DNA of 64,000 bases from Mobula birostris (Eukaryota), in assembly GCF_030028105.1 (NCBI RefSeq), contig NC_092383.1:87067921-87131920 (forward strand), read 5' to 3'. Shown in pieces: positions 1,542-61,571 of this stretch. Both the position numbers and the translations under genes were made by a program. Position 1 is the stretch's first letter. Every line of letters starts with the position of its first letter. The notes beneath the pieces are model-generated. The model was not told the DNA's origin, searched no databases, and was given only the letters and a program-made list of their open reading frames with translations.

Positions 1542-1627
1542 TTTGTTCCTTCCGCCTGAGGGACAATCTGCCACAGAGTCCTGGAGAGATCTGTGAAATG
1601 TTCATCGGACAGTGTGAATATTGTCAG
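1542..1627 (+). CDS. Gene 1 cytoplasmic exon xCSFRLRDNLPQSPGEICEMFIGQCEYCQ (paralog of gene 2 exon 6)
   Basis: Acceptor ttttattttgggcag|, donor TCAG|GTAATC; 86 nt. Upstream exons are not in the window. Confidence 0.6.
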
Positions 1628-4084
1628 GTAATCTGTTCCACCATACTGTGAAGGAGATATATTATCTGAAAGCACACACAGACATTGCAGGAAATGCTCA
1701 GTAGATCAGACAGAATTTGTAGTAATAAAAAGAAAAATAAAATTTCAAATCCATATCCTTCATTACAATGTTCAAAGATGGAAAAACTCCGTTTTCAGTA
1801 GCACAGAAGGCAGGGTATAAAACAATACGATCCTTTCTGAATACTGTGGAGTAACCAGAGCAGAGGTTTGCTCTGTGTGGAGAATCATTATTGTGTTACA
1901 GCTGGGATTGCCGTGGACGGTAGTTCTGAGATTGTTTGGGTGCCATGGTAGCTCAAAGGGCTATATATATATAAATGAATGTTTCTATCTGTTCCTGACA
2001 AGGTGCTTAGAGGTAGGTGAAGAGAAGATGTCAGGGGTAAGTTTTTTTACGCAGAGGGTGCTGCGTGCATGGAACGGGCTGCCGGTGACTGTGGTGGAGG
2101 CAGATATGATAGGATCTTTTAAGAGACTCCTGGGTAAGTACATGGAGCTTAGAAAAATAGAGGGCTATGAGTAACCCTAGGTAATATTTGAGGGAAGGAC
2201 ATATTCTGCATAGCTTTGTGGGCCAAATGGCCAGTATTGGGCTGTAGGTTTTCTATGTTTCTATGTATAAATTGTCCGAATGCTTCAGCATGTTTAACAA
2301 TTGGATTACATGGGAGCTTGCACATCATCCATCCCCACTAGGCCATTCTAGTATCAATATTTTACAGAAACCTCCGAAGATACTCTCATTGAATCCCATC
2401 AGCATATCCCGATAGTTATTTGTCGCTTTCTCTGGTGTTTATCCATCTTTTCCTTAAGTGTATCTATAACATTTTATGTAACTATTCTTCAAAGTGGCTC
2501 CAGGTTTCATTTTCATTACTGAATGGTGAAGAGTGAGATTGGTCCTTTCTCTGCTGTTAGAAATGGAAGTGTAGAAATAGAAGTGTAAATCTCCCTTTGG
2601 GTTCAATGACATTTCAGTTTGCATTTGGTATATTCCTTCTGAGTTTCAAACTGTGATGTGAAATCAGAAAAAGTAGGACAGGTCTAATCGGAACAGTAAA
2701 TTGGTGATGGCACAGTAGCATAGCAGTTAGTGTCAGACTATACAGTGCCAGCGATCTGTGTCCACTTCCGCTCCTCTCTGTAAGTAGTTTGTATGTTCTC
2801 CCTGTGACTGCGTGCGTCTCCTCTAGGTGCTCTAGTTTCCTCCCACATTCCAAAGAAGTTAGTAGGTTAATTTGCTCACATGGGTTTCATTGGGTAGTGC
2901 AGTAAATATCTGTTCTATGCTGACCTCACCCACCCATCCTCTCACTCTACCCCTCAATCCTGACACTAGTATGGATATTCTATTGTCGCTTCAATCTGTT
3001 ATCAACAATCTCCTTTACTGATATTTTCCACTATTTTCAGCTTGTTTGCTATTCTTACCTTCATAATTAATGTCCTAATTGATTTAACTTTTTCCTTATT
3101 GAAGGATTGGGTTCAATATTATAAAAGAGCTTCAATTCTTTTCTCAATATTATCATTTGCCTTTCTTATTCCCAAAGGTAACTGCAGGATGAAGATTGTT
3201 GGAGGATTCTGCTCTGCTGTACATTTTCCCTTGTTTGCATCACTTCCCCTCCCAGAGCTGTACCCTCAGAGAACTGTGTATTCTCTTGTGCATCCTCCAG
3301 TCTCGGAATCCCACCACCAATGTCAGTAGCTTCAGCTACCCAAAACCCACCCTCTGGACAACTCCATGAACTCCTGCAATTCTGTCCTCTTAACTTTTGT
3401 TCATTAGAGATACAGCAGAGTAACAGGTACTTCCAACCCACGAGCCACCTAATTACACCTATCTGATCAACTAACCTCCTACAACGAACCATTTAGACTG
3501 TAAACCATAAAAGTACTGTAAATTTCCCAAATAATTCCCAAGTTCATTTTCAACCTTTTCTCTCGCTAAACCCCTGTGAAACACCTTGGACCAGTTTAGT
3601 GTGTTGGTGTTGTAAAGCAACATGCCGATGTTGTACATTTAGTAGCGGGTCCTCACTAGGGATCACAGCCACTCAGTCATCAACTGTTATCAAGCATTCA
3701 GAAAATTTATATTCTACAAGCTGAATGACGGGATCAGGGTTTATTAAAAAGCAGAAAACTGAAGATGATCTGGTAGATGTCTGCAAAAGTATCCAGTTGT
3801 TTTACAGAGTAGTGAACATGTTTCTACTTACAGTCGAGAGCAGAAGTCAAGCTATAAACATAAGATAAATAATGAAAATAAATCCACGGACAAGACCATA
3901 GACCATAAGGTATAGGAGCAGAATTAGGCCATTTGGCCCATCAGGACTGCTCTGCACTTCAATCATGACTGATTTATATTCCTTCTCACCCTATTATCCT
4001 GCCTTCTCCCAGTTACCTTTCACACCCTCACCTTCCACATCCATCAGAAATAAAATAGATAATGGAATTTATTTATCATTTCAG

Positions 4085-4339
4085 GAAACGGCCACATTGG
4101 AAGAAAACATTGTTTATGCTGATCTACACCATGTTCGAAACAATGAGGCAGCTGCCCAGTCAGCTAACAATGAAAATGAAACTGTCTATGCAAACATGAA
4201 ACTTAAAAGGAAGTCAAGAGCAGGACACTCTGTTATGGATGAGGACAACACCATCTATGCAGATATCAAATTTCAAAGCCAACACTCAAGGCCCAAATAT
4301 AAAGCTTTCTCTCCTGGCACTCCCCAGGACTCAGAATAA
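4085..4339 (+). CDS. Gene 1 last exon: ITIM/YxNM/ITSM tail of an inhibitory-type Ig receptor
   Basis: Acceptor atcatttcag|GAA; ETATLEENIVYADL...TVYANM...TIYADI...TPQDSE*. Confidence 0.88.
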   Translation, partial: ETATLEENIVYADLHHVRNNEAAAQSANNENETVYANMKLKRKSRAGHSVMDEDNTIYADIKFQSQHSRPKYKAFSPGTPQDSE

Positions 4340-4384
4340 GCTTGATAAAGTCATTACGTGGATCGATTTAAGGCAAAACAGTTA

Positions 4385-10305: not shown

Positions 10306-10306
10306 C

Positions 10307-22219: not shown

Positions 22220-22435
22220 CTATTTGGGCCTTGTGGGTTGGCTTTGAAATTTGACACCTGCATAGGTGGTGTTGTCCTCATCCATAACAGAGTGTCCTGC
22301 TCTTGACTTCCTTTTAAATTTCATGTTCGTATACTCAGTTTCATTTTCATTATTAGCCAACTGGGCAGCTGCCTCATTGTTTCGAACATGGTGTAGATCT
22401 GCATAAACGATGTTTTCTTCCAACGTGGCCATTTC
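22220..22435 (-). CDS. Gene 2 last exon: tyrosine-motif tail (IVYADL, TEYTNM, TTYAGV)
   Basis: Acceptor atcatttcag|GAA; ORF-track protein matches the gene 1 tail. Ends at TAG where gene 1 has TAT, so it is 13 aa shorter. Confidence 0.88.
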   Translation of the reverse strand, partial: EMATLEENIVYADLHHVRNNEAAAQLANNENETEYTNMKFKRKSRAGHSVMDEDNTTYAGVKFQSQPTRPK

Positions 22436-25400
22436 CTGAAATGATAAATAAATTCCATTATCTATTTTATGTCTGATGAATGTAGAAGGTGAGGGTGTGA
22501 AAAGTAAGTGGGAGAAGGCGGGATAATAGGGTGAGAAGGAATATAAATCAGTCATGATTGAAGTGCAGAGCAGTCTTGATGGGCTAAATGGCCTAATTCT
22601 GCTCCTATACCTTATGGTCTATGGTCTTGTCCATGGCTTTTATTTTCATTATTTATCTTATGTTTATAGCTTGACTTCTACTCTCGTCTGTAAGTAGAAA
22701 CATGTTCACTACTCTATAAAACAATTGGAGACTTTTGCAGACATCTACCAGATCACCTTCAGTTTTCTGCTTTTAAATAAACCCTGATCCCTTCATTCAG
22801 CTTGTAGAATATAATTTTTCAGAATGTTTGATAACAGTTGATGACTGAGTGGCAGTGATCCCTAGTGAGGACCCGCTACTAAATGTACAACATCGGCATG
22901 TTGCTTCACAACACCAACACACTAAACTGGTCCAAGGTGTTTCACAGGGATTCAGCAAGAGAAGAGGTGGAGAATGAAGTTGGGAATTATTTGGGCAAAT
23001 TACAATACTTTTATGGATTACAGTCTAAATGGTTTGTTGTAGTAGGTTAATTGATCACATGGGTGTAATTGGGTGGCTCGTGGGTCGGAAGGACCGGTTA
23101 CTCTGTTGTATCTCAAATGAACAAAAGTTAAGAGGACAGAATTGCAGGAGTTCATGGAGTTGTCCAGAGGGTGGGATTTGGGCAGCTGAAGCTACTGCTA
23201 TTAGTGGTGGGATGCCGAGACTGGAGGATGCACAAAAGGAACACACAGTTCTCTGAGGGTACAGTTCTTGGAGGGAAAGTGATGCCAACAAGGGAAAATG
23301 TACACAGCAAAGCAGAATCCTCCAACAATCTCCACCCTGAATTACCTTTGGGAATAAGAAAGGCAAATGATAAAATTGAGAAAACAATTGAAGCTCTTTT
23401 ATAATATTCAACCCAATTCTTCAATAAGGAAAAAGTTAGATCAATTGGGACATTAATTATGAAGGTAAGAATAACAAACAAGCTGAAAACTGTGGAAAAT
23501 ATCACTAACAAAGATTGTTCATAACTGACCCAAGACACAATAGAATATTCCTACTGGTATCAGGACTGAGGGGTAGAGTGAGAAAGTGAGTGGGTGAGGT
23601 CAGCACAGAACAGATATTTACTTATTTAGAGATACAGCATGGAAACAGGCCATTCTGGCCCAACAAGCCCATATCACCCAATTAAACACATGACCAAATT
23701 AATGTACTAACGTCTTTGGAATGTGGGAGAAAATCAGAGCACTCAGAGGAGATCCACAGAGTCACGGAGAGAACATACAAACTACTTACAGACGGTAGCG
23801 GAAGTGAACCCGGGTCACTGGCGCTGTAATAGTGTTACGCTAACCGCTATTCTACCGTGCCATCCCCAATTTATTGTTCTGATTAGACCCGCCCTATTTT
23901 TTCTGATTTCACATCAGAGTTTGAGACTCAGAGTGAATATACAAAGTGTAAGCTGAAAAATCATTGAACCCAAAGACAGATTTACACAATTAGGTGTTCC
24001 ATCTCCAACAGTAGAGAAGGGACCAATGTCACTTTTCACCTTTCAGTAAGGATAATAAAGACTGACGCCACTTTGAAGAATGGTCACGTAAAATATTATG
24101 GATACACTTAAGGAAAAGCTGGATTACCACAAGTGAAAGGAACATATAACTGGAAGTATATGCTGATGGGATTCAATGAGAAGGGTGTTCAGACGTTTGT
24201 GTAAAATATTAATACTGGGCTGGACTAGTGAGGATGAATCTCGTGTAAACTGCCATGTAATCCAATTTTGAAACATTCTGAAGCATTCAGACAATTTATA
24301 CTTCATGTTCATACCTGGGTTTCATTCTTGCCACCTCCGTGAGATGTGTTGTACTTGGATTCTGGAAAATACAACATTACTGATAAAAATTCCATGTCAG
24401 GAACAGACATAAAGATTTATTTATTTGTTTATTTAGTGATACAGCACAGAGCAGGCAATTTCAGCCTTCCCCAGCAACCCCCGACAAACCAGATTAACCG
24501 TAACCTAATCATGTGACAATTTCCATTGACCAATTCACCTACCTGGTACGTCTTTGGACTGTGGGAGGAAACTGGAGGACCCGGAGTGTATCCATGCATC
24601 CCACAGGGAGAACATACAGAGACTCCTTTCAGAACGGCACTGGAATTGAACTGCAAACTCTGGAACGCCCCGAGCTGTAATAGCTTCGCACTTAACCATT
24701 ACGTTACCATGGCCCCCATACTGAATCTCAGAACCATGGGAACCCCATCTGCAACACAATAATGATTCTCCATACAGAGCAAACCTCTGCTCTGGTTACT
24801 ACACAATGTTCAGAAAGGATCACATTGTTTTGTCCACCACCTTCTCTGCTATTGAAATCGAATGCTTTCCATCTAAGAACATTGTTATAAGAGTTTTGGA
24901 TTTGAAATTTTAATTGTTTTCTATTGCTAAAAATTCTGTCAGATCTACCGAGCACTTTTTTTACAATGTCTCTGCATATTTTTAGAGAATATATCTCCTT
25001 CACAATATGATGGAGCAGATTACCTGACAATATTCACGCTGTCCCATGAACGTCTCATTGATCTCCCCAGGACTCTGTGGCAGATTGTCCCTCAGGAAGA
25101 AGGAACAAACTGCGCAAAATAAAAATCATCTCATTTTCCTACTGGCCACGAAAGCCTCTTTTCAATTCGACACTGTGATCAGCAATTTCATACAGAATAC
25201 AAATGTCCTATCCTCGATGAACGGTTTTGATGGCCTTTGACTATTAGTGGATGTGAGGTCCCTCCTGATTTGGTTTGCTATTTGATTTCCAGCCACTAGA
25301 TATCACTGCTTATTTGTAAATTTACAGCATCGTTCTGTCCTTACAACTGTGTTTCTAAGCAATTGACCTTTGACATCAGGTCGGCCATTTTAAAGTTACT

Positions 25401-28400
25401 TGTATATTTATTGATTCATTTCTCAGAAGCACTTTGTTATGAGTTGATGGAATTTTAATCAATGTTTGGATCCATCCCTCGTGAGAACACCTCGATGCAC
25501 TGTCTTTTTACTCAGCTCCTGGCTTACTGTAATGTGTTGGTGAACAATCAAACTGCCTTAAAACTACAACTACACCTGGAATAGAGTTAACCGATCTGCA
25601 TATCTTCAGAAAATGAGGAAAACTCTTGAGTGAGGGCAGAATAATGGAAGTTGAAATGTGAACAGATTTTATTTCACAAAGCGTGTCCCATTTTTTAAAA
25701 TAAATAGTCGTCAACTATATAAAGAGAAATGTCAAGGGAAATCAAGAGCAGTACACTCTTTTACTGATGAGGATAATGTCACCAATAAAGATATCAAATT
25801 TCAAAGCCCTCCCATCTTTAAATCTTCATTAATTATATTACCACCCACCTTTTGCCTCACATGTCATCTTTTCTGATGTATTTTTTTCTATTTTGTACTC
25901 TATCAGATTCACACTCTTTTGTGCTTCCTTCAGTACTTCCTCTGCACCTCAAGACTTGTTATCGCTCACATTTTCCAGTTCTGGTGTAAGGTCATTGCCT
26001 TGAAGGATCGGCTGTTCCTCTCTCCACAGCTGCCATCTGACATGCTGAGCATCCAGAGCACTTTTCTGCCATGATCTCAGGTTTTGATCATTTAGGGAAT
26101 TTCTCTTTGGAAAAAAATGCACTCCTTTTGTTCAGATCTTTGCAACAAACAGTAACTGGAGGAAAATGTGACACTGAAAGTAATTGTCTGATCAGTTGGG
26201 GAGAGGGAGAGTCCAGGAAATACATCACAGGGATCAGTTAAATTATTATTTGTTATAATTGTCAGCCAATAAGTTATATTCCATCAGCCGATGAGTTGGA
26301 GGCTGCAGGGGCTTTATTTTCCAGTGATCAACTCCATTTCCCCATCTGATAACAACACACAGAAGATCACTGTGCTCACAGTTCTCTTCACTGGTTTACA
26401 AAGTCTATTTAAGGGACAGACAATTATTTATTTATTTAGCAATACATTGCGAGTAGGCTCTTCCGGACCTTCGAGCCACACTGACACATTAATCCCAACA
26501 AACCTGACTAACCTTAACCTAAACATAGATAATTTACAAAGACCGAGTACCAGACCTGATGTGTCTTTGGACTGTGAGAGGAAACTGGAGCAGCCAGGGA
26601 AACCCTCACATTCAATGGGGAAGACACAGAGACTCCCTACAGAACAGCATCGGAATTGAACTCAGAACTTCAAAAAGCCCCTCGGAGTAATCGTGTCGCG
26701 CTAATCTCTATGCTACCGTGGTGCCCATCTCAGGATCATCTCAATAAAGCAGACCCGTGACTTAATCGATAGCAACTTTCTACAACGAGAGCAGAGAATT
26801 TTCTCCAGTGGTATGCAGTGAATGGTAGATTGGTAAAAGATGCACCTTTTTTTTGAGAATTACATGAGATTATGATTTTATACATACATTGTCCAAATGA
26901 TTGCATTTATTTGGAGGTTGTACTGAGGAACAGCTTATTGAATACACTTTCAATGACAAGAGCTAATTCCCCAAAATTGAATAGAACAGGTGAAACTATC
27001 GAAATCTTTCTTCTACCCAACCTCTTGGTTCTCTACCATTCCATGCTTGAAGTAAGATTCCATCACCTGATGTTTCAAGAATAATGGAGTCATCAGGTTA
27101 CAGTGGAAGCAACACCATTCATTGAGGTGTTGCAACCCAACACATCAACACTCTGATCCTGGCTTTTTGTTGACTGCAGCTAAATCAAGTTCATTAAAAT
27201 TCAGTAGCTAGCTATCATATTCATCATGAGATAATGAAAGAAAATAGACACCTACCCCTGCTTTTCCTCTTCAGGTAGCAAAGTAGACAAACGACAAGTA
27301 GTATGAGTAGAATCCCAACAACACTGAGCACAGTTGTGTAAATGGATCTGTGGTAAAAAAGTAGGAAAGGATCAGTCCTGGTTCATCACTTATTCTTGGC
27401 TATTTATAAAGTCTGGTATTTACACAGCAATTTTCATGAGCTCAGGACATCTGCAGCTCAGAAAATGAACATTAGACATTGTTGACAGTGTGGGAAATTG
27501 CAACAGCCAATCTGTTCACTCCAAAGTCTCACAAGTAGAAATGTGATCATGACCAATGATTGTGATGTTGGTTAAGAGAATAACTACTGTCCAGATCATT
27601 TGAGAATCCTCTCATGTTCTTTTACAAACATTTTGTTGGAACTACTGCACAGTAGGACAGACAGCATTGCTGACCGTGTAGCCAAACCTCTTCCTTGAAC
27701 GGTTTCCGTGGTTTTCTTTATTTCGTGGCTGTCCAGCCTCTTGGTTAGCTTAGTCGAGTCAGGCTGAGAAACCTGTTCTAATATATAACAATGACTTTAT
27801 AACTCAGAACATGAGCTTCTACTGCTATACTTAAATTATTAAATATTTAGTGTAAGAAAATTTGACATCTTGACAAGAAAATCAGGAATACTCAGTTTCC
27901 AATACATGATTTCATTGAAATTAATCATGTCAAGCTTGTTTATCACCAGTTAAAGAGAAACAAATTTCTCTCCCAGATGGGCCTGTTTGAAACCACCTGT
28001 AGAGAGAAGCTTGTACTTTACATTTTATTTGTTGAATCAGTTGTCGTCGTTTCCTTCACAGTATTTTCACAGAAATGAATCGGCCCTGTTGAAAGAAAGT
28101 AAAATTCAGTTTCTTGCTTTGTACTTGCAAGATAAAGAGAGCACAATTGTTAGACCAATGGGTACCTGATCATGGTGGACCAAAAGTGAGCTATTACCCA
28201 ATGCGACATATAAAGATTAAAGATGAGATTTATTTGCCACATGTACATCAGAACTTACAGTGAAATGCAACAATTGCATCAAAGACCAAAACAGAATTTG
28301 TTCTGGGGGCAGCTGCAAATGTTCCATGCTTCCAGTGCCAAAGTATCTTACCTACGCATTACTAATACTAACACGTGTGTTTTTGGAGCCTGGGAGGAAA

Positions 28401-37400: not shown

Positions 37401-38479
37401 ATAGAGCTACTGTACATGGAGATTTGTGTGTGTATGTTTCTTGTGTTCCAGGGTTGAATCGGGGGTCAGTGGGATCATTTGAGATTATGTTTCAATTCTC
37501 TCCATAATGACAATGTCCTGACTTCCTCCGCACTTACAGACAAGTTTATAAACTGCAGTAAGAAACTCCTCATGATGTCTGAAACTGAGCCCTCTGGTTC
37601 TGATGGAAATTTTATATTCTGTACCTGTCAGGTATTTCTCTGTGTAGTTAGAAGGTGCTGCAACAGTGGTCATTACCACTTTGGTGTCCAGAAATCCAGG
37701 TGTGATTTCATTTCCTTTAGGGACTTATTTAGTGTTTATATCTAATTTCTGGAATTAAAAACCACATATCCATAATGATAATGATCAACTACCAGATTGT
37801 CAAAATCCCATCTGGATCAGAAAGGCCTTTAGGGACAGAAATCTCTCGTCCCTCCCCACCCAGGTTATCTTTGACTCCACATCTAGAAATGTTCTTTACT
37901 AAACGCCCCACTGAAATGGCCCAGGAAAGACACTGATAACAGGAGAATAACATCAATTTTCATAGTGATCCTAACAGAGTGAGATTAGATTCCAGTTGAC
38001 ATGATATTCCTGTTTAACAGCCTCTAGATTCCATCAGCTGGACATATTCTTCCCTCACCTGACTCCACACTATTCCCCTTTTCTTCTTGTCCGCTTCCAC
38101 CTCTCACCAATCTCCAAAGTCCACCCCTTTTCCTTCCCTTTCCACTTGCCTGTCGTGCTTCACCCCTCCTAAGTCCCCGACGACCTAGTAGACCCAGTCT
38201 TACACCTCCCCTCTCATATTTCGACCATCTCCCTCTCCACTCACACTTGAGTGTCACAGACCAAATTGTAGGCGATTCCCTTCCCGTAACAGAAGCTGCT
38301 GAGTTCCCCCAAGAGTGCACTCTGAACTCCAATTTCTGATATCTTTAGTGTCTACAGATATTCAAGTACTGTTCCGCGAATGGTGTATGACCCCCCAAAC
38401 CAACACTGCTTATGCAAACGTCCAGCACAATTTGTCACTTACCAGGTAGCGAAACAATCAGGAGAATTGAAGCCCACAT
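22220..38479 (-). CDS. Gene 2 (whole model): CD300/pIgR-like V + C2 Ig inhibitory-type receptor (MDIR-like), 7 coding exons, 376 aa
   Basis: Exons 38443-38479, 36777-37097, 32905-33219, 28022-28085, 27256-27347, 25024-25109 and 22220-22435. All have GT-AG boundaries; intron phases 1,1,1,2,1,0 are mutually consistent; total 1131 nt = 377 codons with no internal stop. Confidence 0.82.
25024..25109 (-). CDS. Gene 2 exon 6: cytoplasmic (V)CSFFLRDNLPQSPGEINETFMGQREYCQ
   Basis: Acceptor ttttattttgcgcag|, donor TCAG|GTAATC; 86 nt, phase 1->0. Same length, splice sites and open frame as the paralog at 1542-1627. Confidence 0.62.
25734..25808 (+). pseudogene. Degenerate inverted relic of the tyrosine-motif last exon
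   Basis: GKSRAVHSFTDEDNVTNKDIKFQS vs KSRAGHSVMDEDNTIYADIKFQS (4206-4280); the tyrosine is lost. Confidence 0.7.
27256..27347 (-). CDS. Gene 2 exon 5: uncharged transmembrane segment SIYTTVLSVVGILLILLVVCLLCYLKRKSR
   Basis: Acceptor tttttaccacag|, donor AGGG|GTAGGT; long hydrophobic run followed by a basic stop-transfer; phase 2->1. Confidence 0.9.
28022..28085 (-). CDS. Gene 2 exon 4: Cys/Thr-rich stalk (R)PIHFCENTVKETTTTDSTNK
   Basis: Acceptor tttctttcaacag|, donor AAAT|GTAAAG; 64 nt, phase 1->2, bridging C2 to TM exactly. Homologous exon at 61494-61571. Confidence 0.82.
31671..31696 (-). CDS. Candidate alternative terminal (secretory) exon of gene 2: (K)LTCNCNP*
   Basis: Acceptor gcttttctcag| in the C2-stalk intron, phase-1 compatible. 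The paralog at 46958-46983 keeps the acceptor, CxC, Pro and stop. Confidence 0.45.
31950..32510 (-). mobile_element. CR1 3' fragment (other CR1 pieces at about 1990-2250, 6085-7060, 11300-12730, 44700-45180 and 62170-62600)
   Basis: RGHSLRIEERPFKTEMWRNFFIQRVV, the CR1 ORF2 C-terminus. Confidence 0.8.
32905..33219 (-). CDS. Gene 2 exon 3: C2-type Ig domain (FcR-like/PECAM-like) with short extension
   Basis: EPVSAPVV...LSCESLQGSFPIQYKWYK...YYCSASNWHGARSSAMVNLTVYSKGETCSYTTEIDGN. Acceptor ttttccacag|; donor AACA|GTATGT; phase 1-1, 315 nt. Confidence 0.9.
33670..35685 (+). mobile_element. 5'-truncated Rex1/Babar LINE (RT domain) with (ATGACT)n tail
   Basis: DYRPVALTSHIM, DPLQFAFQ, FFDFSSAFNTI, GAPQGTVLSPFLF, KFSDDS; in-frame stops at about 34152 and 35073. 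Confidence 0.92.
35690..36201 (+). mobile_element. LTR-like fragment ending ...ccctgaCA, between the Rex1 and the resumed Tc1 element
   Basis: Pyrimidine-rich LTR-type sequence with a gtctgcgattggatcc...tgaca end; Tc1 halves at 33290-33625 and 36205-36410. Confidence 0.5.
36777..37097 (-). CDS. Gene 2 exon 2: V-type Ig domain, CD300/pIgR/TREM-like
   Basis: SGALWAEKPVRGVVGRAITIDCHY...KYWCHGWTRQC...RVSITDNPEQGIFTVTMENL...DTGWYSCG...LQVSD. Canonical C-W-C plus the extra KYWC-x6-C pair. Acceptor ccttcag| (alternative 6 nt downstream at 37091); donor GATG|GTAGGT. Confidence 0.93.
38443..38479 (-). CDS. Gene 2 exon 1: signal peptide MWASILLIVSLP
   Basis: ATG, hydrophobic leader and phase-1 donor CCTG|GTAAGT; joins the V exon to give ...LPVSGALWAE. 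Confidence 0.88.
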
Positions 38480-42599: not shown

Positions 42600-44420
42600 G
42601 TTTTTAAAGGCCGAAACCTGTGAGATATCCATCACCTGTTTGGTGGCTTTCAGGAGGAAATGGAATTGTGACTGGTTTCAGTGACTTGCCAACGCATTTG
42701 GCACTGAATTTCGAAAAAGTTCTGGTAATCCACGCTGAGGCTAAGTAAGAGGAGAAGGAGTTTGATGTTCTTCAGGCATATCAACGAGATGGGCATTCCT
42801 GCATTCAACAAACCGAACCCAGAGACAAGCATGTCATCACTCCCCGGGACATCTAATGCATGGACCCTTCTCAGAGGAAACATGGATGAGACAGAAATCT
42901 CTCATCCCTACCCACCAAGGTTTACCTTTGACTCCAGATCTCATAATATTCTTTCCTAATTGCCCACTGAAATAGCCCAGGAAAGACTCTGATTTCAAGA
43001 CAATAACATCGAATATCACAGAGATCCCTGCTGTGTGAGATCAGATTCCAGCAATGGGAGACCTGATGTTTCTGCTTAACAGCCTCCAGGAGATTTCTCC
43101 AGCTGGAAATATTCTCCGCACCCCCCCCCCCCAGCTGACTCCGGTCTATTACCCTTTTCGTGTTGTCTTCTTCCATCAGTCACCAAGCTCCAAACTCCAA
43201 CACTTTTCCTCCCCATTCCATCTGCTTGCCATGTTTCACCCATCCTCAGATTCCAACCACCAGGAGAATTCAGTCTCAGACCTCTCTTTCTCCTATTTAC
43301 ACTCTCTCATTCTCCACTCTGACTTCATGCAGATTCTTGACCCAAAGCTTGGTCTAGTCCCTCCCCACTGACAGACATTTCTTGGCACATTGACTTCCTC
43401 CAGAAGTTTGCTCTAAAATCCAGATTCCGACATCTTCACTGTCTACATTTACTCAAGCACTGCTCTGTAAACTATGCATGACCCCAAATCAACACTGCTT
43501 ATGCAGAAGTGCAGTGTTGTTTGTCACTCACAGGTCAGGAAACCAATCAGAACAATCAATGTCCATAACATTTTATTGACAGAGACACAGCCAGGGCCTG
43601 TCTGTCCTCAGAAATCAATGACTAAAATTAAAATGAGGAAGAAGGCAGCAGGATGTTTGATCAAAAAACAACACTGACCCAAGTGGTGTGTGGCACGTGA
43701 ATATCTGAAAGGCTTTTAGTTATATTTAGCAAGACAGGAACATTTAAACAATTCCCAAAGACTAAATGAAATGGTGAAAAGTGTTAAAATATTGGACACA
43801 AGCAGCAGTAAACGTGCAAATCTGAAGGAAAAATAAACAGCTGGAGGTGTTCTGATTAATCTGAAATGTTGACCACTCTGCCTCCGCAGATCCCGCCTGA
43901 CTCCTGAAGGCAGGAGAATGGGGTTGAGGGAGAACATAAATCAGCCAGGGGAGTGATGGACTTACACTCCAAGATTTGGACATCATTCTGGATTTGCCTT
44001 GGAGATAAATCAAGCAAACATGTTCTGGGGAACTTGCTGCTGAGAAAGGAGCAAAGTAGGAAATAGCTGTCATGCAGAAGTGCTTTTCATGCAAAGTAAC
44101 CATGCGGTACATCCATTCATTTCCCTAGATTCTGCCAGGCCTTCTGAATTCCTCCAACATTTTGTGTTGTTGCTTTTGGTTTTATTATAGTCGAGGGTTA
44201 AGGTGATCCAAGAATGTACATTGTACAGTATGAGTGCTGACAGTCTGTACGTTGTACAGTATACGTGCTGACTCCATTGCATCAGTCACTGTTGTCATCT
44301 GTGTAATATTCACCCTCAGTGAAGGATGTAGTCAGAACTTCGGTCTTCTTTACTTGTCTTACCAGAAAGAATATAGAGAAGTGTCAATGGTTGCTACACA
44401 CTGACAGCTTGTTCTGGTCT
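42600..44420 (-). pseudogene. Partial tandem duplicate of the gene 2 5' region (36340-40980) with the V exon deleted
   Basis: Collinear matches: 42600-42889 with 36340-36734, 42890-43800 with 37833-38720, and 44180-44420 with 40560-40960. The junction at 42889 skips the equivalent of 36735-37832. Confidence 0.8.
43532..43571 (-). CDS. Second (orphan) leader exon MLWTLIVLIGFLT
   Basis: Paralog of 38443-38479 with ATG, hydrophobic leader and phase-1 donor ACCT|GTGAGT. Confidence 0.7.
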
Positions 44421-46900: not shown

Positions 46901-46957
46901 CATTATAATGATAATACAGTTCACTTTCTCTCATTTTCAAGACCCTTTATTGTACAT

Positions 46958-46983
46958 TCATGGGTCACAGTCACAGATCAGTA
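46958..46983 (-). pseudogene. Orphan paralog of the candidate secretory exon: xLICDCDP*, with AATAAA just downstream
   Basis: aacttttctcag|TA CTG ATC TGT GAC TGT GAC CCA TGA atgtacAATAAA. Flanking 46960-47120 aligns with 31670-31840. Confidence 0.45.
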
Positions 46984-47739
46984 CTGAGAAAAGTTACACC
47001 TTCCATTTGCAGATTCACACCCTGATGAGCAATGCAAGCTGCAATATTTGCAGCTCACTCATTTTAATCAGCACCCAAGTTTACTCCCATTGTTTGTTCT
47101 CCTTTAAGATCTTTGTATAGTGACTGGAAATATTCATGATGTGTCTCTTTCTCCCTCCATTTCCACAAAATGTGTCATAAAAACTCAGCAATCATGCACC
47201 TTATCAAATTTGAAAGTACATTCACTAAATTTGTTATCAAAGTTTGTATATGTCACCATATCCTACCTTGAGATTCATTTTCTTGCAGTAGATCAAAGAA
47301 ATACAATAGATCAAATACAGATCAAGTAATGGAGACAAGGTTCATACCTGAGAGTGGTCCGAGAGTGAGAAACAACCCAAAGTTTGGACCATTTAAGGGC
47401 TGGGTCAGAAGAAGAGGTCAGAGTGTCGGGGCTGGAAGCGAGGCGAGGGCAAGTCTGCAGTGATGCTTGGCTTTGTGATTAGGGTCTTGCTCCATTTACT
47501 CGGCCTTGGGATGAACTGTGGCAGTTGCCTGCTCCGGCTGCATTGATGTCTGGCTGTGTGTCGTTCATAAGCCTCTGGTTCTGAATGCAATTTGCTTGCT
47601 TTCATTTTATTTGTGAGATATGTTCTGTGCATTGGGTGTTTGATGGTCTTGTTTTTGGTGGTTTCTTTGTTTTGTGGCTGCCGGTAAGGTGACGAATCTC
47701 AAAGTTATATAGCGTATACATGCCTCAATAATAAATGTA

Positions 47740-52586: not shown

Positions 52587-52682
52587 TTAATCTTGGTGCA
52601 AAGCTCCCCCAAGGTTGGTGTAATCTGGGATCATTTTCCTTTTCTCATGGACCAAACTGTGAGGATCTGATTGATCACGTCT
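52587..52682 (-). CDS. Gene 3 candidate last exon: RRDQSDPHSLVHEKRKMIPDYTNLGGALHQD*
   Basis: Strong acceptor cacttttgcctttacag|; phase 0 matches the TM exon; single YxxL motif; ATTAAA about 55 nt after the stop (52528-52533). Confidence 0.65.
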   Translation of the reverse strand, partial: RRDQSDPHSLVHEKRKMIPDYTNLGGALHQD

Positions 52683-53366: not shown

Positions 53367-56300
53367 TTTCAGTCGAAGCAAGCAGCTGAGAAGGAGTGAA
53401 GAAATCGGGTAGAAAAAGTCATTTTTTTTTAAACAATGCTCGGGGAGAAGGGTCTGCACTGCGCAGGCACGTGACGTGGCGTGCCAAGGTTTAAAAAGCA
53501 GACCACCATATACAGTGGCCATCATTGGAGTGGACTGAGTCAGAGTGGGACGGCTTTGGCTCAAACAGGCTTCGGCGAGAACAGACAGAGGCCGGGGTAG
53601 GTTCTGGTAAGTTTTTTGTACAGATTGTTTAGTGCAGTGAGAATGCCAGGCAGGATGTTGGAATGCTCCTCTTGCAGGATGTGGGAAGTCAGGGAGCCCT
53701 CCAGTGTCCCTGACAACGACACCTGCAAGAAGTGCGTCCAGCTGCAGCTCCTGACAAACCGTGTTAGGGAACTGGAGCAGGAGCTGGATGACCTGCGGAT
53801 CATTCGGGAGAATGTAGAGATTATAGATCGTAGCTACAGGGAGGTAGTTACGTCAAAGGAGCAGAGGACAGGAAATTGGGTCACTGTCAGGCGAGGGAAG
53901 AGGAAAGGGCAGGCAGAGCAGGGTTCCCCTGTGGCCATTCCCCTCAACAACAAGTATACCACATTGAATACTGTTGGGGGGGATGACTTACCCGGGACTA
54001 GCTGCAGTAGCCGGATCTCTGGCACTGAGTCTGGCTCTGCAGTGCAGAAGGGAGGGAGGAAAAAGAGGAGAGCGGTAGTGATAGGGGACTCGATAGTTAG
54101 AGGTGCAGATAGAAGGTTCTGTGGTTGTGACAGAGAATCCAGGATGGTTTGTTGCCTCCCAGGTGCCAGGGTCAAGGATGTCTCTGATCGATTGCATGAC
54201 ATTCTGAAGTGGGAGGGTGACCAGCCAGATGTCGTGGTGCACATCGGTACCAATGACATAGCAAGGAAGAGTGAGGAGGTCCTGGAGAGTGAGTATAGAG
54301 AGCTTGGTAGGAAGTTGAAAAGCAGGACCTCAAGGGTGGTAATCTCAGGATTGCTACCTGTGCTAGGTGCCAGTGAGGGTAGGAATAGGATGCTCTGGAG
54401 GAGGAACAAGTGGCTGAGGAACTGGTGTAGGGGGCAGGGTTTCAGATTTCAGGATCATTGGGACCTCTTCTGGGGCAGGTGGGACCTGTGCAAGAGAGAC
54501 GGGTTACACTTGAACCACAGGGGGACCAATATCCTTTCAGGGAGGTTTGTTAGTGCTATTGGGGAGGCTTTAAACTAGATTTGCAGGGGGATGGGATCAG
54601 AGTGCCAGAGCTGACAGTGTGGCTGGGGTGAAAATAAATGATATTGAAAGTTTAAGCAAATCCGCTGATAGAAAGGTTGTGAGTGGTGGTAAAAATCTTC
54701 TGAGGTGTATATATTTCAATGCTAGGAGTATTGCGCGGCACGGATGAGTTGAGGGCATGGATTGGCACGTGGAATTATGATGTTGTAGCAATTAGTGAAA
54801 CTTGGCTACAGGAGGGGCAGGACTGGCAGCTTAATATTCCAGGGTTCCGATGTTTCAGATCTGATCAAGGCAGAGGAATGAAAGGTGGGGGAAGTAGTAT
54901 TGCTTGTTAGGGAAAATATTACAGCAGTGCTCAGGCAGGACAGATTAGAGGGCTTGTCTACGGAGTCCTTATGGGTGGAGCTGAGAAACAGGAAAGGTAT
55001 GGCCACATTAGTGGGATTGTATTACAGACCACCCAATAGTCAACGAGACTTGGAAGAGCAAATCTGCAGAGAGATAGCAGGCAACTGCAGGAAACATAAA
55101 GTTGTGGTGGTAGGGGATTTTAATTTTCCATACATTGATTGGGACTCCCATACTGTTAGGGGTCTAGATGGTTTAGAGTTTGTAAAATATGTTCAGGAAA
55201 GTTTTCTAAATCAGTATATAGAGGGACCAACTAGAGGGGATGCAATATTGGATCTCCTGTTAGGAAACGAATTAGGGCAAGTGACAGAAGTCTGTGTAGG
55301 GGAGCACCTTGGTTCCAGTGATCATAACACCATTAGTTTCAATTTGATCATGGACAAGGATAGACCTGGTCCTAGGGTTGAGGTTCTGAACTGGAAGAAG
55401 GCCAAATTTGAAGAAATGAGAAAGGATCTAAAAAGCGTGGATTGGGACAGGTTGTTCTCTGGCAAAGATGTGATTGGTAGGTGGGAAGCCTTCAAAGGGG
55501 AAATTCTGAGAGTGCAGAGTTTGTATGTTCCTGTCAGGATTAAAGGCAAATTGAATAGGAATAAGGAACCTTGGTTCTCAAGGGATATTGCAACTCTGAT
55601 AAAGAAGAAGAGGGAGTTGTATGAAATGTATAGGAAACAGGGGGTAAATCAGGTGCTTGAGGAGTATAAGAAGTGCAAGAAAATACTAAGAAAGAAATCA
55701 GGAGGGCAAAAAGAAGACATGAGGTTGCCTTGGCAGTCAAAGTGAAGGATAATCCAAAGAGCTTTTACGAGTATATTAAGAGCAGAAGGATTGTAAGGGT
55801 TAAAATTGGTCCTCTTGAAGATCCAAGTGGTCGGCTTTGTGCGGAACCAAAGGAAATGGGGGAGATCTTAAATAGGTTTTTTGCGTCTGTATTTACTAAG
55901 GAAGCTGGCATGAAATCTATGGAGTTTAGGGAATCAAGTAGTGAGACCATGGAAACTGTACAGATTGAAAAGGAGGAGGTGCTTGCTGTCTTGAGGAAAA
56001 TTAAAGTGGATAAATCCTCGGGACCTGACAGAGTGTTCCCTCGGACCTTGAAGGAGACTAGTGTTGAAATTGCGGGGGCCCTGGCAGAAGTATTTAAAAT
56101 GTCGCTGTCTACGGGTGAAGTGCCGGAGGATTGGAGAGTGGCTCATGTTGTTCTGTTGTTTAAAAAAGGATCGAAAAGTAATCCGGTAAATTATAGGCCG
56201 GTGAGTTTAACGTCAGTAGTAGGTAAGTTATTGGAGGGAGTACTAAGAGACAGAATCTACAAGCATTTGGATAGACAGGGGCTTATTAGGGAGAGTCAAC

Positions 56301-57580
56301 ATGGCTTTGTGCGTGGTAGGTCATGTTTGACCAATCTGTTGGAGTTTTTCGAGGAGGTTACCAGGAAAGTGGATGAAGGGAAGGCAGTGGATATTGTCTA
56401 CATGGACTTCAGTAAGGCCTTTGACAAGGTCTCGCATGGGAGGTTAGTTAGGAAAATTCAGTCGCTAGGTATACATGGAGAGGTGGTAAATTGGATTAGA
56501 CATTGGCTCGATGGAAGAAGCCAGAGAGTGGTGGTAGAGATTGCTTCTCTGAGTGGAGGCCTGTGACTAGTGGTGTGCCACAGGGATCAGTGCTGGGTCC
56601 ATTGTTATTTGTCATCTATATCAATGATCTGGATGATAATGTGGTAAATTGGATCAGCAAGTTTGCTGATGATACAAAGATTGGAGGTGTAGTAGACAGT
56701 GAGGAAGGTTTTCAGAGCCTGCAGAGGGACTTGCACCAGCTGGAAAAATGGGCTGAAAAATGGCAGATGGAGTTTAATACTGACAAGTGTGAGGTATTGC
56801 ACGTTAGAAGGACAAACCAACGTAGAACATACAGGGTTAATGGTAAGGCACTGAGGAGTGCAGTGGAACAGAGGGATCTGGGAATACAGATACAAAATTC
56901 CCTAAAAGTGTTGTCACAGGTAGATAGGGTCGTAAAGAGAGCTTTTGGTACATTGGCCCTTATTAATCAAAGTATTAAGTATAAGAGCTGGAATGTTATG
57001 ATGAGGTTGTATAAGGCATTGGTGAGGCCGAATCTGGAGTATTGTGTTCAGTTTTGGTCACCAAATTACAGGAAGGATATAAATAAGGTTGAAAGAGTGC
57101 AGAGAAGGTTTACAAGGATGTTGCCGGGACTTGAGAAACTCAGTTACAGAGAAAGGTTGAATAGGTTAGGACTTTATTCCCTGGAGCGTAGAAGAATGAG
57201 GGGAGATTTGATAGAGGTATATAAAATTATGATGGGTATAGATAGAGTGAATGCAAGCAGGCTTTTTCCACTGAGGCAAGGGGAGAAAAAAACCAGAGGA
57301 CATGGGTTAAGGGTGAGGGGGGAAAAGTTTAAAGGGAACATCAGGGGGGCTTCTTCACACAGAGAGTGGTGGGAGTATGGAATGAGCTGCCAGATGAGGT
57401 GGTAAATGCGGGTTCTTTTTTAACATTTAAGAATAAATTGGACAGATACATGGATGGGAGGTGTATGGAGGGATATGGTCCGTGTGCAGGTCAGTGGGAC
57501 TAGGCAGAAAATGGTTCGGCACAGCCAAGAAGGGCCAAAGGGCCTGTTTCTGTGCTGTAGTTTCTATGGTTTCTATGGTT
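53367..57580 (+). mobile_element. Near full-length CR1 LINE (ORF1 + frameshifted APE/RT ORF2) nested in an older CR1 3' end
   Basis: ORF1 as listed separately; ORF2 pieces GDFNFP, SDHN, YRPVSLTSV, FADDTK; (TTTCTATGG)n tail. The older CR1 3' UTR is split at 53366/57580. Confidence 0.93.
53616..54578 (+). CDS. CR1 ORF1: Cys motif + coiled coil + SGNH esterase-like domain (likely start at M11, MPGRMLEC)
   Basis: CSSCRMW...CKKC; VIGDSIVR; VHIGTNDI; DGLHLN; uninterrupted 320-codon frame. Confidence 0.88.
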   Translation: MYRLFSAVRMPGRMLECSSCRMWEVREPSSVPDNDTCKKCVQLQLLTNRVRELEQELDDLRIIRENVEIIDRSYREVVTSKEQRTGNWVTVRRGKRKGQAEQGSPVAIPLNNKYTTLNTVGGDDLPGTSCSSRISGTESGSAVQKGGRKKRRAVVIGDSIVRGADRRFCGCDRESRMVCCLPGARVKDVSDRLHDILKWEGDQPDVVVHIGTNDIARKSEEVLESEYRELGRKLKSRTSRVVISGLLPVLGASEGRNRMLWRRNKWLRNWCRGQGFRFQDHWDLFWGRWDLCKRDGLHLNHRGTNILSGRFVSAIGEALN

Positions 57581-57944
57581 AAGAACATGTTCGGCACAGC
57601 ATTGTGGTCCGAAGGGCCTGTATTGTGCTGTAGTTTTTCTATGTCTGAGACATTTTTGAAGGGCAGAAATGTCTAATATGAAGGGTCATAATTTAAGGTG
57701 GTTGGAGAAATGGATCGAGGGAATGTCAGAGGTAAGTTTTATTTACACAGAGAGCTGTGGGTGCATGCTACCTACTACAGGGGTGGTGGTGGAAGCAGAT
57801 ACATTCTCGGCATTTAAGATTGATCTTGGAGTAGGTTAAGACGTCTGCACAATATCATGGGCCAAGGCATGTACGGTGCTGTACATTTGGATGTTTGATG
57901 TTCTGATTCATGGAAGCCATTCGGAAGCATCTACTGACCGAGGC

Positions 57945-58610: not shown

Positions 58611-58634
58611 TGTTTGTTACTGACCTGGACTTAC

Positions 58635-58725
58635 CTTTTTGTCTCTCATGAACCATGTGACAGCGATAGTGCAGATCCCCAGCAGAGCAAAGAACAGCCA
58701 GCGTCCCACTTTCCATATCATGTAA
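58635..58725 (-). CDS. Gene 3 TM exon, activating type: YMIWKVGRWLFFALLGICTIAVTWFMRDKK
   Basis: Acceptor cccctttgttcag|, donor AAAG|GTAAGT; 91 nt, phase 2->0; Lys/Arg at the N-terminal edge of the hydrophobic segment. Confidence 0.85.
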
Positions 58726-58794
58726 CTGAACAAAGGGGCAGAGATACAGAATCAGTGGGAGGAGAGGAGACAGCTTTGTATTTGAAATATTTAC

Positions 58795-58806
58795 CTCCTG
58801 GTTCCT
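58795..58806 (-). CDS. Candidate 12-nt microexon (x)GTR(S) upstream of the gene 3 TM
   Basis: gatttcacag|AGGAACCAGGAG|gtaaat; phase 2->2, frame-preserving; 69-nt downstream intron. Confidence 0.35.
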
Positions 58807-61493
58807 CTGTGAAATCAGTGAAGTCGAGCAATAAAAGCAGCAAGGCCAGGGAAGTTCAGCTGGGAGATTAATCTCATGCTGGACTGAGGGAGGGAAGATG
58901 ACCTATGATCATCATTTGGAGACACAATTGCTGAAACACGACTGCAGATACTGTATGTCGTGACAGCGGATAATGGAGATAGATTTAGAAATGGCAGGGA
59001 AGAAAATAATGAGTTTCTGTAATGACGAGTCTGGGGATAATGTAATGTCACTGACATTGTCAGTCGTGGTTAGCACAATGATTTACAACAGTCAGCTGTA
59101 ACATTGGGTTCAATTCCTGCCTGTCTGTAAGGAGTTTGTACATTCTCCCAGTGACTGCATGGGATTCATCCGGGGGCTCCAATTTCCTCCCACATTCCAA
59201 AGACATCTGGGTTCGGGTGTTGTGGGCATGCGATGTTTGCACTGGAAGCATGGCAACACTTGTGGGATGCCCAGCACAATCTTTGCTGGTTTAATTTGAA
59301 AATTATGCATTTGTCAGGAAATATAGATGAGCTTTGACCAAAATCGAGCAACAGAGATAATTTAGCAGTAAACATAAATAAACACAACAGGAAACAAGGT
59401 AAATTCTAAGCATGGAGAGAGAAGGCCAGCTGGTTTGATGAGTGAACAAGGTTTGTGGATGAGAACTGGGATTAAATAGGCTGCAGGTAATGAGTCCAGA
59501 TTGAGCGGCAGGTGAATTCTAGTAGTCAGATGGAGATTGGGAGGTTGCTGCATGTGCAGGCCTGAGAGCATTTCAGTGTATGTCTCGATGTAAATGTGAG
59601 AGATATAATCAATATTGCAGAAAGAGGACACAGCTCTTCGGAAGTTTGACTATGAAACCGTACGGACAGATACTCTGTGAAAACCGATAAATGATCCATA
59701 ACTAATTGAAGAAGGAAGTTGCGGATGAAATACACCAACAAATAAGGACAATTTAAAAGAACATCCAGAAAAATAATCGGGAAGTTGATCTCAAAAATCT
59801 CAGTATCTCTTGGGCACCACAGCAATGTAGCAGTTAGTGCGACACTATTACAGCTCGGGGCGTCAGAGATCAATTTTATTGTTTTCTGGAAGGAGTCCAG
59901 ATGTCCTCCTCATGGAATGTGTGGGTTTTCTCTTGGTGCTCCAGTCTCCTCTCAGAGTCCAAAAATGTATTGTTAGTTGGTTAGTTGCCCGTTGTAAATC
60001 ATTCTGTGATTAAATTCGGGGTTGCTAGGCAGAGTGGTTTGAAGGGCCAGAAGGGCCTATTCCATGTTGTACCTCAGTCAATAGAATAAATTAAAAAATA
60101 TAGTGGTAGGTGTGGTGATGGAGAAATCAAAAGCAACAATGCACAAGGGGCTAACTTGAAACACAACGGTTAAAGAGGCCATGAACGGAATTTGCAAATT
60201 TGAGCATTTAGAGCAATTTAGAGCAAGGATTCCAACCTTTTTTATGCCTTGGACGAATACCATTAAGCACTGGGGTTCATGGACCCCTGGTTGGAACCCC
60301 GGATTTAGCGGGTAAATCAACCAAAACATGTAGAAGTGAGATGAGATGAGCAAAGTGCACTTTATGATGATAATAGAGAAGGAAACAAATAAGAAGAAAA
60401 CAAAATACGTAAGGAAAAGCAGATAGAACGTAGAACAGTACGGCAAAGTTCAGGCTCTTCAGCCCACCATGTAGTGCTGGCTCTTTAACCTATTCCAGTA
60501 TTAATCTAACTCTTCCCTCCCACACAGCTGTTCATATTCCTTTCCTTGTGTGCCTATCTTAAATCTCCCAACCTTACCTGTCACTACCAGTACCCCAGAA
60601 TCACGTTCCAAGCACTTGCCACTCTCTGTGTAAAAGACCTTCCTCTGATAACCCAACTGTACTTTTGCCCAGATTGAACAGTATGTCCTCTCATATTAAA
60701 GTTCAAAATATACTTATTATCGAAGTATATATATGTCACCATATACAGCACTGAGATTCATTTTTGTGGGCATATTCAATAAATCTGTAGAGTAATAATC
60801 AACACAACAAAGTGCTGGAGGAACTCAGTATCTGCAGATTTTCTTGTTTGAGAATAATAACCATTACAGAATCAATACAAGACCGCCAAACTTACGTCTT
60901 GATCCAGAGTGTAGGAGACAGCAAACTGTGCAAGTACAAAAAGAAAGAAGTAATAAAAATTAAATAAGCAATAAATATTGAGAGGATGAGATGAAAAGTT
61001 CTTGAAAATGGGAACATTGGTTGTGGGGAAAAAGCCAAGGAAAAATGATGCTGACTATTCAATCTACTTATGTCTCCCATCATCTTGTACACCTCTATCA
61101 ATTCTCCTCTTAAACTCCTGCTGTTCAAAGAGAAAATCCCTAGCTCACTCAACCTATCCTCATAAAACATGTTGTCTGTATCAGGCAGCATTCTGGTAAA
61201 TCTCTTCTAAAGCTTCTATATCCTTCCAATGAGCTGACCAGAACTGAACACCATATTCCAACTGTTATGCCTAAACTATTAAATGTTTAGGGTAAGAAGA
61301 TTATCTTTGATCTCAGGCTTGATGCATGTACAAGAAAATCAGGAATACTCAGTTTCCAATACATGATTTCATTGAAGTTAATCATGTCAAACGTGTTTAA
61401 CACCAGTTAAAGAGAAATGAATTTCTCTCCCGACTAGCTCTATTTGTAAGCGGTAGCAGTGAAACACTCTGCAGAGAAAACCTTATACTTTAC

Positions 61494-61571
61494 ATTTTAT
61501 CTGATGACGATTCTTCCCTTTTAGCACTTGTTGTAGTTTCTTTCACGGTATTTTCACAAAATGGATTGGTC
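61494..61571 (-). pseudogene. Gene 3 stalk exon, homolog of 28022-28085, with an apparent 1-nt deletion
   Basis: Acceptor ttttcttttaacag|, donor AAAT|GTAAAG. The frame encoding FCENTVKETTTSAKREESSSDK is 1 nt out of register with a phase-1 entry (13 vs 14 nt before TGT). Flanking intron 61330-61810 matches 27870-28180. Confidence 0.7.

Follow-up and report, generated by a model that had tools for sequence, protein, structure and literature searches.

Exons of the locus

The window, i.e., the whole 64-kb stretch analyzed, contains a single V exon and a single complete C2 exon, and it therefore holds one complete gene (gene 2) plus the 3' ends of two others (genes 1 and 3), whose ectodomains are located outside it. 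The exons named in an initial annotation of this DNA were all present at their positions. Gene 2 comprises the following.

22220..38479 (-): gene 2, complete inhibitory receptor of MDIR2 type, 7 exons, 363 aa (predicted model)
38479-38443 (-): leader exon
37097-36777 (-): V exon, matching pIgR, CD300 and NKp44 structures
33219-32905 (-): C2 exon, matching FCRL5
28085-28022 (-): stalk exon
27347-27256 (-): neutral transmembrane (TM) exon
24361-24315 (-): small cytoplasmic exon of 47 nt, ESKYNTSHGGGKNETQ, conserved in 22 relatives
22435-22220 (-): ITIM/ITSM tail exon (IVYADL, EYTNM, TTYAGV), stop TAG

Every junction is AG/GT and the phases close throughout. The Pfam domains detected at the locus were V-set and Ig_2, and two of the tail motifs, IVYADL and TTYAGV, match the ITIM/ITSM consensus, from which binding is predicted. 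Judged by its sequence, gene 2 is an intact gene and the only one of the three that is demonstrably so; the pieces of the three-gene cluster proposed initially are real and in place, but intactness holds for this member alone. Its neutral TM was recovered as described. However, the length of 376 aa given to the product gave way to 363 aa. The larger figure very probably derives from a homologue, at 25109-25024, of an 86-nt candidate exon of gene 1 (exon A), since gene 2 reaches 376 aa with it and 363 aa with the 47-nt exon. Exon A was rejected as part of gene 2: it had no match among the 250 family proteins fetched for comparison, which include RNA-informed NCBI models, whereas the 47-nt exon is kept in 22 relatives.

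Gene 1 is represented by its 3' end.

1542..1627 (+): candidate exon A (86 nt, open frame, phase 1 to 0, AG/GT sites); homologue in gene 2 at 25109-25024
~1951..2262 (+): LINE 3' end in place of the 47-nt cytoplasmic exon; exon and donor gone in the gene 1/gene 2 alignment across the site
4085..4339 (+): last exon, with ITIM IVYADL, YxNM motif VYANM and ITSM TIYADI, open to its own stop

The acceptor of exon A, at 1542, is where the initial annotation begins. The tail exons of genes 1 and 2 correspond to the two inhibitory-type tails with tyrosine motifs noticed before, and lie within an inverted duplication (800-5243 vs. 26667-21283, 82–87% identity). They are 91.7% identical, with a dN/dS of ~0.38, that of gene 1 being 13 codons longer and matched by 44 family proteins (best E 1e-38). 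Part of the LINE fragment (2000-2185) corresponds to the LINE tail found at 53174-53358, and a search of positions 1-4000 for the 47-nt cytoplasmic exon was negative at both the nucleotide and the peptide level. The tail stays in frame solely via exon A, unsupported by relatives.

Gene 3 contributes an activating-type 3' end.

61494..61571 (-): stalk exon, 78 nt, with 1 nt deleted in comparison with gene 2 and orthologue-like proteins
58635..58725 (-): activating-type TM exon, (I)YMIWKVGRWLFFALLGICTIAVTWFMRDKK, with WKVGRW, Lys/Arg-bearing, the Arg conserved in the family
52587..52682 (-): short tail exon, RRDQSDPHSLVHEKRKMIPDYTNLGGALHQD-stop; ATTAAA at 52532

As noticed previously, this third paralog has the stalk exon and ~300 nt of the downstream intron in common with gene 2 (61261-61599 vs. 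27821-28113, 73%) and then switches to the Lys/Arg-bearing TM and a short tail. The stalk, however, is frameshifted. The normal phase 1 reads GPIHFVKIP-stop and the shifted frame TNPFCENTVKETTTSAKREESSSDK, while the models P0231 and P0176 are uninterrupted over this region (GPIHFCEN...REESSSYK/DK-IYMIW); the missing nucleotide is a C. Everything 3' of the deletion is intact. The TM type is carried by 47 family proteins, including skate MDIR5 (35 tblastn hits), and its Arg sits in the outer third of the TM, a position from which pairing with an adaptor is predicted. The tail matches that of P0231 over all 31 residues, but its Tyr is a Phe in P0231, so YTNL is no conserved motif.

The remaining features are relics and transposon sequences.

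43532..43571 (-): orphan leader exon L1 (MLWTLIVLIGFLT), donor GTGAGT, phase 1; leader matches by P0045 and P0157
31300..31390 (-): relic of a second C2 exon, 3' third (EKGEKSSEVVNLSISNSVSICRNVIEVNST), donor intact
25733..25849 (+): degenerate piece of a tail exon, oppositely oriented within an intron of gene 2, its last motif without the Tyr
47070..47156 (-): piece resembling an exon, with a match to the alternative terminal exon of P0044 and P0195, two activating isoforms of Mobula
53616..57405 (+): frameshifted LINE with esterase ORF1, endonuclease and reverse transcriptase, lying in antisense orientation within the gene 3 intron that separates the TM exon from the tail exon

L1 is part of a second copy (42580-43904) of the promoter, leader and intron of gene 2, a copy that cleanly lacks the segment with the V exon (~36735-37833). 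In the C2 relic, a LINE endonuclease fragment (31391-31480) has taken the place of the 5' part. A diverged copy of the exon-like piece is found at ~31760-31847.

A receptor family of cartilaginous fish

All the pieces matched family proteins far above chance, with best E values of 1e-58 for the V, 9e-50 for the C2, 1e-38 for the tails and 1e-12 for the activating TM. The nearest proteins came exclusively from rays, skates and sharks, in agreement with the cartilaginous-fish origin suggested initially. The database searches retrieved MDIR2, MDIR3 and MDIR5 of Rostroraja eglanteria as direct homologues, together with more than 100 elasmobranch paralogs on one chromosome-sized contig per species. 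The MDIRs (modular domain immune-type receptors; MDIR1-5 of Rostroraja/Raja eglanteria) were described in the clearnose skate (Cannon et al., 2006; Immunogenetics 58:362, PMID 16738934, as cited in PMC3031540) and are presented in the latter source as activating/inhibitory multigene families.

The skate lead given in the initial annotation was thus borne out, since gene 2 and MDIR2 (P0233) are homologous over their full length (49.6% identity over residues 1-361 of 363, E 6e-129; against MDIR3 and MDIR5 the E values were 1e-114 and 2e-96). The ectodomain of gene 2 has the modules of the MDIRs, a pIgR/CD300-like V followed by an FcR-like C2. Likewise, the ITIM-type tail is preceded by an ESK.NT...Q exon, and the TM of MDIR5 is that of gene 3 (WKVGRW). 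In contrast to the skate genes, the locus belongs to another batoid lineage, the nearest models being from stingrays (73–76% identity), and the tail of gene 2 ends 13 codons sooner and has no counterpart of the IYASV motif at the C-terminus of MDIR2 and MDIR3. The genomic organization is also visible here: the paralogs converge, one leader is orphaned, a C2 exon survives as a relic and LINEs have caused damage. The stingray models P0208, P0210 and P0206 (Hemitrygon akajei) align end to end with gene 2 and, together with P0205 (Hypanus sabinus), share its seven-part architecture (66–76% identity) and the points at which its exons join, among them the Arg codon between C2 and stalk. They carry, however, 11–13 extra C-terminal residues that gene 2 has lost because of a TAT to TAG change. 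These models may represent either paralogs or the orthologues of a different species.

The suggestion that the family may be known while the locus is not was fair, but relatives already carry automatic annotation in at least eight elasmobranch genomes. The locus adds real but ordinary members to the MDIR family and leaves its current understanding unchanged. For a group represented until now largely by skate cDNAs, it does provide genomic detail, namely the exon structure, the convergent arrangement of paralogs, a leader left orphaned, the remains of a C2 exon and the loss of an exon to a transposon. It also makes birth-and-death turnover visible within an innate-receptor cluster of a cartilaginous fish. 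It helps to trace the early combination of CD300/pIgR and FcR-like domain families in jawed vertebrates, and can serve annotation, in which relatives go under the wrong labels of pIgR-like, CMRF35-like or FCRL5.

Activating and inhibitory members

We classified the 250 family proteins by motif. An activating TM was found in 39 and a clear ITIM tail in 27, another 54 had at least two ITIM-like motifs, and the remaining 130 fell in no class. When these labels were mapped on a tree of 94 V domains, at least 20 changes between activating and inhibitory were counted, six of them forced by well supported branches, and well supported activating/inhibitory sister pairs appeared. The V domains closest to that of gene 2 come from activating members (85–87% identity, against 83–84% to inhibitory ones). 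This intermingling shows that the family is one of paired activating/inhibitory receptors. The pairing claimed in the initial annotation hence stands at the family level; in the window both module types, ITIM tail and charged TM, occur, but gene 2 alone is demonstrably intact.

Gene 2 is predicted to encode a type I membrane protein. Its V, of pIgR/CD300 type and with two disulfides, would be followed by a C2 of FCRL type, a short stalk that contains Cys, a TM lacking charges and a tail with one ITIM and one ITSM. If the gene is expressed, as we infer, binding of a putative ligand would lead to tyrosine phosphorylation and, by analogy, to the recruitment of phosphatases of the SHP/SHIP type that would damp cell activation. 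Gene 3 carries the activating module of the family, its conserved Arg presumably pairing with an Asp-bearing ITAM adaptor as in LILRA, Fc-alpha-RI, NKp46 and the activating forms of CD300.

Functional and damaged genes

The best explanation overall, and one that we consider very probable, is that the locus is a segment of the MDIR multigene cluster of a batoid, probably a relative of stingrays, with gene 2 as an inhibitory receptor and genes 1 and 3 damaged. This cluster evolves as genes duplicate, domains are lost and transposons do damage. Gene 1 is a convergent inhibitory paralog whose small cytoplasmic exon was destroyed by the LINE, so that in-frame joining of its open ITIM exon has probably been lost. 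Gene 3 as assembled is most likely a recent pseudogene, or the source of a truncated secreted product only, because of the frameshift in its stalk.

That all three genes are functional and form a working inhibitory/activating pair, gene 1 via exon A and gene 3 via an upstream AG or after correction of an assembly error, is possible but doubtful. Exon A is open in both paralogs, with AG/GT sites and phase 1 to 0, and together with the open gene 1 tail and its dN/dS this means that gene 1 may still function despite the lesion; the 1-nt deletion of gene 3 could be an assembly error, and an AG located 19 nt upstream of the canonical stalk acceptor restores an uninterrupted frame through stalk, TM and tail. 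Against this, exon A is absent from the family proteins, the differences between its two copies are mostly amino-acid-changing substitutions, the upstream AG borders a SINE-like repeat and its use would bring in six unrelated residues, and a frame-breaking lesion is flagged in a relative too (the Hypanus model P0176, a LOW QUALITY PROTEIN). We consider it unlikely that gene 2, and gene 3 by its frameshift, make mainly secreted receptors. Read through unspliced, the gene 2 stalk donor gives ...TNKM-stop, with an AATAAA at 28029 in the last codons of the exon, the Hemitrygon model P0042 ends in ...TPNKM, and phase 1 of gene 3 ends at the stop already mentioned. But P0042 is the one family protein of the 250 with such an ending, the TAA belongs to the donor consensus GTAAAG, gene 3 has GATAAA instead of AATAAA, and the downstream TM and tail exons of gene 2 are intact and conserved. 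The soluble receptors mentioned as a possibility in the initial annotation come down to a donor stop codon, one AATAAA and one model of another species.

Orthology of these genes to a named receptor of mammals (pIgR, CD300/CMRF35 or FCRL5), in place of a separate family, is highly improbable. Such names are given to relatives by NCBI ('polymeric immunoglobulin receptor-like', 'CMRF35-like molecule 2', 'Fc receptor-like protein 5'), and the domains do resemble their namesakes: the V of gene 2 shares with CD300 and pIgR D1 the extra C-C' disulfide (YWC...QC; phmmer E 1e-20 to CD300 structures), its C2 is similar to that of FCRL5, and CD300 pairs activating and inhibitory members like the MDIRs. 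However, both signalling modules and the way the domains are combined have direct counterparts in skate MDIR2, MDIR3 and MDIR5, while outside cartilaginous fish (sharks, rays and the chimaera Callorhinchus) matches reached only E 1e-20 over ~25% coverage. CD300 has a single V domain and lacks the C2, and pIgR has V-type domains only and lacks an ITIM; for neither does the evidence point to orthology. Membership of pIgR (tandem V only) was rejected, as gene 2 has one V, an FCRL-type C2 and an ITIM/ITSM tail, and that of CD300/CMRF35 (single V ectodomain) was rejected, as a C2 follows the V. A CD300/pIgR-type V and an FCRL-type C2 are not known to occur together in any one mammalian family. LILR, KIR and teleost NITR also join a shared ectodomain to either an ITIM tail or a charged TM, but these, like FCRL5, lack a V of CD300/pIgR type (that of NITR is of a different type), and the resemblance of the MDIRs to the four is functional, not one of membership.

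Each gene unit might also contain switches of its own, which would make the cluster more than a set of simple paired genes. The promoter and leader cassette of L1, intact but with the V exon deleted, could serve as an alternative first exon of gene 2; the stalk AATAAA and the Met-stop donor may offer a choice between membrane and secreted forms like that of Ig mu; and exon A, kept open in both paralogs, might restore the ITIM tail of gene 1 once the LINE had destroyed the normal exon. We consider such built-in switches quite unlikely.

The intact receptor gene and its product

We have found that the locus is real and was correctly recognised in the initial annotation. Its intact member, the inhibitory-type gene 2, consists of seven exons with AG/GT at all sites and phases that close, and has a product of 363 aa.

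Exons of gene 2 (window positions, splice sites read in the sequence)
38479-38443, minus strand, exon 1
37097-36777, minus strand, exon 2
33219-32905, minus strand, exon 3
28085-28022, minus strand, exon 4
27347-27256, minus strand, exon 5
24361-24315, minus strand, exon 6 (47 nt)
22435-22220, minus strand, exon 7

The initial annotation had proposed a product of 376 aa for this gene and had the locus start at 1542, which is the exact acceptor of an open 86-nt segment with a GT donor (exon A, 1542-1627, plus strand; gene 2 homologue at 25109-25024). Using exon A in place of the 47-nt exon (ESKYNTSHGGGKNETQ) adds 13 codons and takes the protein from 363 to 376 aa. However, neither copy of exon A was matched by any of the 250 family proteins fetched, whereas 22 relatives retain the 47-nt exon. 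For this reason exon A was rejected as a true exon, the longer model was abandoned, and the 363-aa form is taken as the supported predicted product of gene 2.

Aligned from the first to the last residue, this protein is 73–76% identical to three Hemitrygon akajei models (P0208, P0210 and P0206) and, also end to end, 66% identical to the Hypanus sabinus protein P0205. All the junctions are concordant with those of the relatives, including an Arg codon split over the C2/stalk junction. The V exon matches the solved domains of pIgR, CD300/CMRF35, NKp44, TLT-1 and TREM2 and has four cysteines, as in this fold class, and the C2 exon matches FCRL5. The cytoplasmic tail carries the motifs IVYADL (ITIM consensus), EYTNM and TTYAGV (ITSM consensus), and ends 13 codons earlier than in gene 1 and the relatives because the TAT of gene 1 is a TAG here.

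Exhaustive profile searching with the V exon retrieved 2739 relatives, the closest belonging to rays, skates and sharks. In a second search the clearnose skate (Rostroraja eglanteria) proteins MDIR2, MDIR3 and MDIR5, of the modular domain immune-type receptors, were returned by name, together with dozens of paralogs per species, located on one contig for each species. The skate family named in the initial annotation was a sound lead, gene 2 being 49.6% identical to MDIR2 end to end (E 6e-129). Some predicted relatives (e.g., P0007, P0134 and P0062) seem to include absorbed transposon or neighbouring-gene sequence. The MDIR family was reportedly described in 2006. MDIRs are presented in the literature as activating and inhibitory receptors that belong to multigene families and resemble CD300, TREM, FCAR and pIgR (PMC3031540). 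The family is already auto-annotated, under misleading names, in at least eight elasmobranch genomes; the present locus adds further members and some locus-level detail, of moderate interest.

Pairing and the activating-type gene 3

The V domain of gene 2 is 85–87% identical to those of activating members and 83–84% to those of inhibitory ones. In a tree built from 94 V domains, the activating/inhibitory label changed at least 20 times, compared with about 30 for shuffled labels, with six changes forced by strong branches, and there were supported activating/inhibitory sister pairs, MDIR5 with MDIR3 among them. Judging from these V sequences, the MDIRs thus form a paired family as the term is normally understood. 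The paired receptors first proposed for this locus hold at the family level; the ectodomain of gene 3 lies outside the window.

As had been noticed initially, gene 3 shares its stalk exon and following intron sequence with gene 2, and then continues into an Arg-bearing TM and a short tail. The intron homology extends over about 300 nt.

Gene 3 exons downstream of the stalk (minus strand)
exon after the stalk, encodes YMIWKVGRWLFFALLGICTIAVTWFMRDKK (TM)
last exon, encodes RRDQSDPHSLVHEKRKMIPDYTNLGGALHQD (tail)

This TM is present in 47 relatives, including skate MDIR5, its conserved charged residue being the Arg, and in Mobula P0231 and Hypanus P0176 the corresponding stalk-TM-tail sequence is read without interruption. 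In the gene 3 stalk one base is absent between the Phe and Cys codons; phase 1 gives GPIHFVKIP followed by a stop, and the shifted frame stays open over what remains of the stalk exon and on through TM and tail. An AG located 19 nt upstream would bring the frame back, its use being without any support. This AG lies at the edge of one of the copies of a SINE-like element (...ATGCTGCCTGGCCTGC...) found at 57940-58620 and 61599-61740, which flank the TM exon and adjoin the acceptor of the stalk exon. An antisense LINE in the intron between the TM and tail exons carries esterase, endonuclease and reverse-transcriptase domains and is frameshifted. The YTNL of gene 3 was considered as a signalling motif and rejected, since it is unconserved and Phe replaces its Tyr in Mobula P0231. 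With five activating relatives as queries, no significant extra stalk or mucin-like exon was detected in 58.7-64 kb.

The domain types, the tyrosine motifs and the conserved Arg can be read directly in these genes. By analogy with CD300, LILR, KIR and Fc-alpha-RI, inhibition would operate via phosphorylated ITIM/ITSM and SH2 phosphatases, and activation via an Asp-bearing ITAM adaptor; the ligand may, again by analogy, be of the type that the V domains of CD300 or pIgR bind. Left unspliced, the stalk donor reads Met-stop, gene 2 has an AATAAA within the last stalk codons and one Hemitrygon model ends at the same unspliced reading, which faintly suggests that soluble receptor forms might exist.

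Gene 1, duplications and relics

We searched the whole window with all 250 family proteins. The Ig exons found were one V, one complete C2 and the 3' third of another C2, with no additional ones anywhere in the window. The remaining family exons were two leaders, two stalks, one neutral TM and one charged TM, and the tail pieces were two full ITIM-type, one inverted fragment and two short activating-type. The window is vertebrate DNA with abundant LINE and SINE fragments. Its self-comparison revealed an inverted duplication (800-5243 vs. 26667-21283, 82–87% identity) and a direct partial duplication (36385-38827 vs. 42580-43904). The inverted duplication has at its outer edge a 237-nt segment (5432-5667 vs. 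21037-21273) that is 95% identical in direct orientation, i.e., flipped with respect to the arms, and has an ORF with a Tc1/mariner-like 'SPELNP' remnant.

Only the 3' part of gene 1 (plus strand) falls within the window. Where the 47-nt exon would be expected, the alignment of gene 1 with gene 2 gives way to the 3' end of a LINE and picks up again 13 nt past the lost donor; nucleotide and peptide searches of 1-4000 gave no trace of this cytoplasmic exon. If a family-typical phase-1 TM donor were spliced to the phase-0 tail exon, the frame would be lost. Even so, this exon is open and shows 91.7% identity to its gene 2 counterpart; dN/dS is about 0.38 over small counts. Such an open tail could reflect either a recent exon loss or the use of exon A, which has the right phases.

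The direct duplication contains a second, intact-looking leader (L1, minus strand), running from the ATG at 43571 to a phase-1 GTGAGT donor after 43532. The sequence around it duplicates the promoter, leader and intron of gene 2 but cleanly lacks the V exon segment. Both leader cassettes retain a common upstream block, CTGCTGCCTTCTTCCTCATTTT (in 38500-38560 and 43600-43660, minus strand), some 60–80 nt before the ATG, the reverse complement of which includes GAGGAAG, a PU.1/Ets-type core. This core hints at a possible myeloid or lymphoid promoter.

The C2 relic, the 3' third of the exon plus its donor, adjoins a LINE endonuclease fragment (31300-31480) and points to an ancestral V-C2-V-C2 form like that of the family protein P0011. 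The inverted tail fragment (25733-25849) is degenerate. One segment, 47070-47156, matches an alternative last exon, the one used by activating isoforms in Mobula, and is overlapped by a direct repeat (31662-31847 vs. 46949-47133), whose copy past the C2 exon of gene 2 (31662-31847) is degenerate. More LINE reverse-transcriptase fragments (33690-35531 and 45550-46421, both plus strand, 48731-51406 and 62153-62591) were located within intron 2 of gene 2 and in the interval separating genes 3 and 2. The 15-kb spacer separating the convergent genes holds two GC-rich tandem arrays side by side (13353-13682), of three 72-nt and two 58-nt units.
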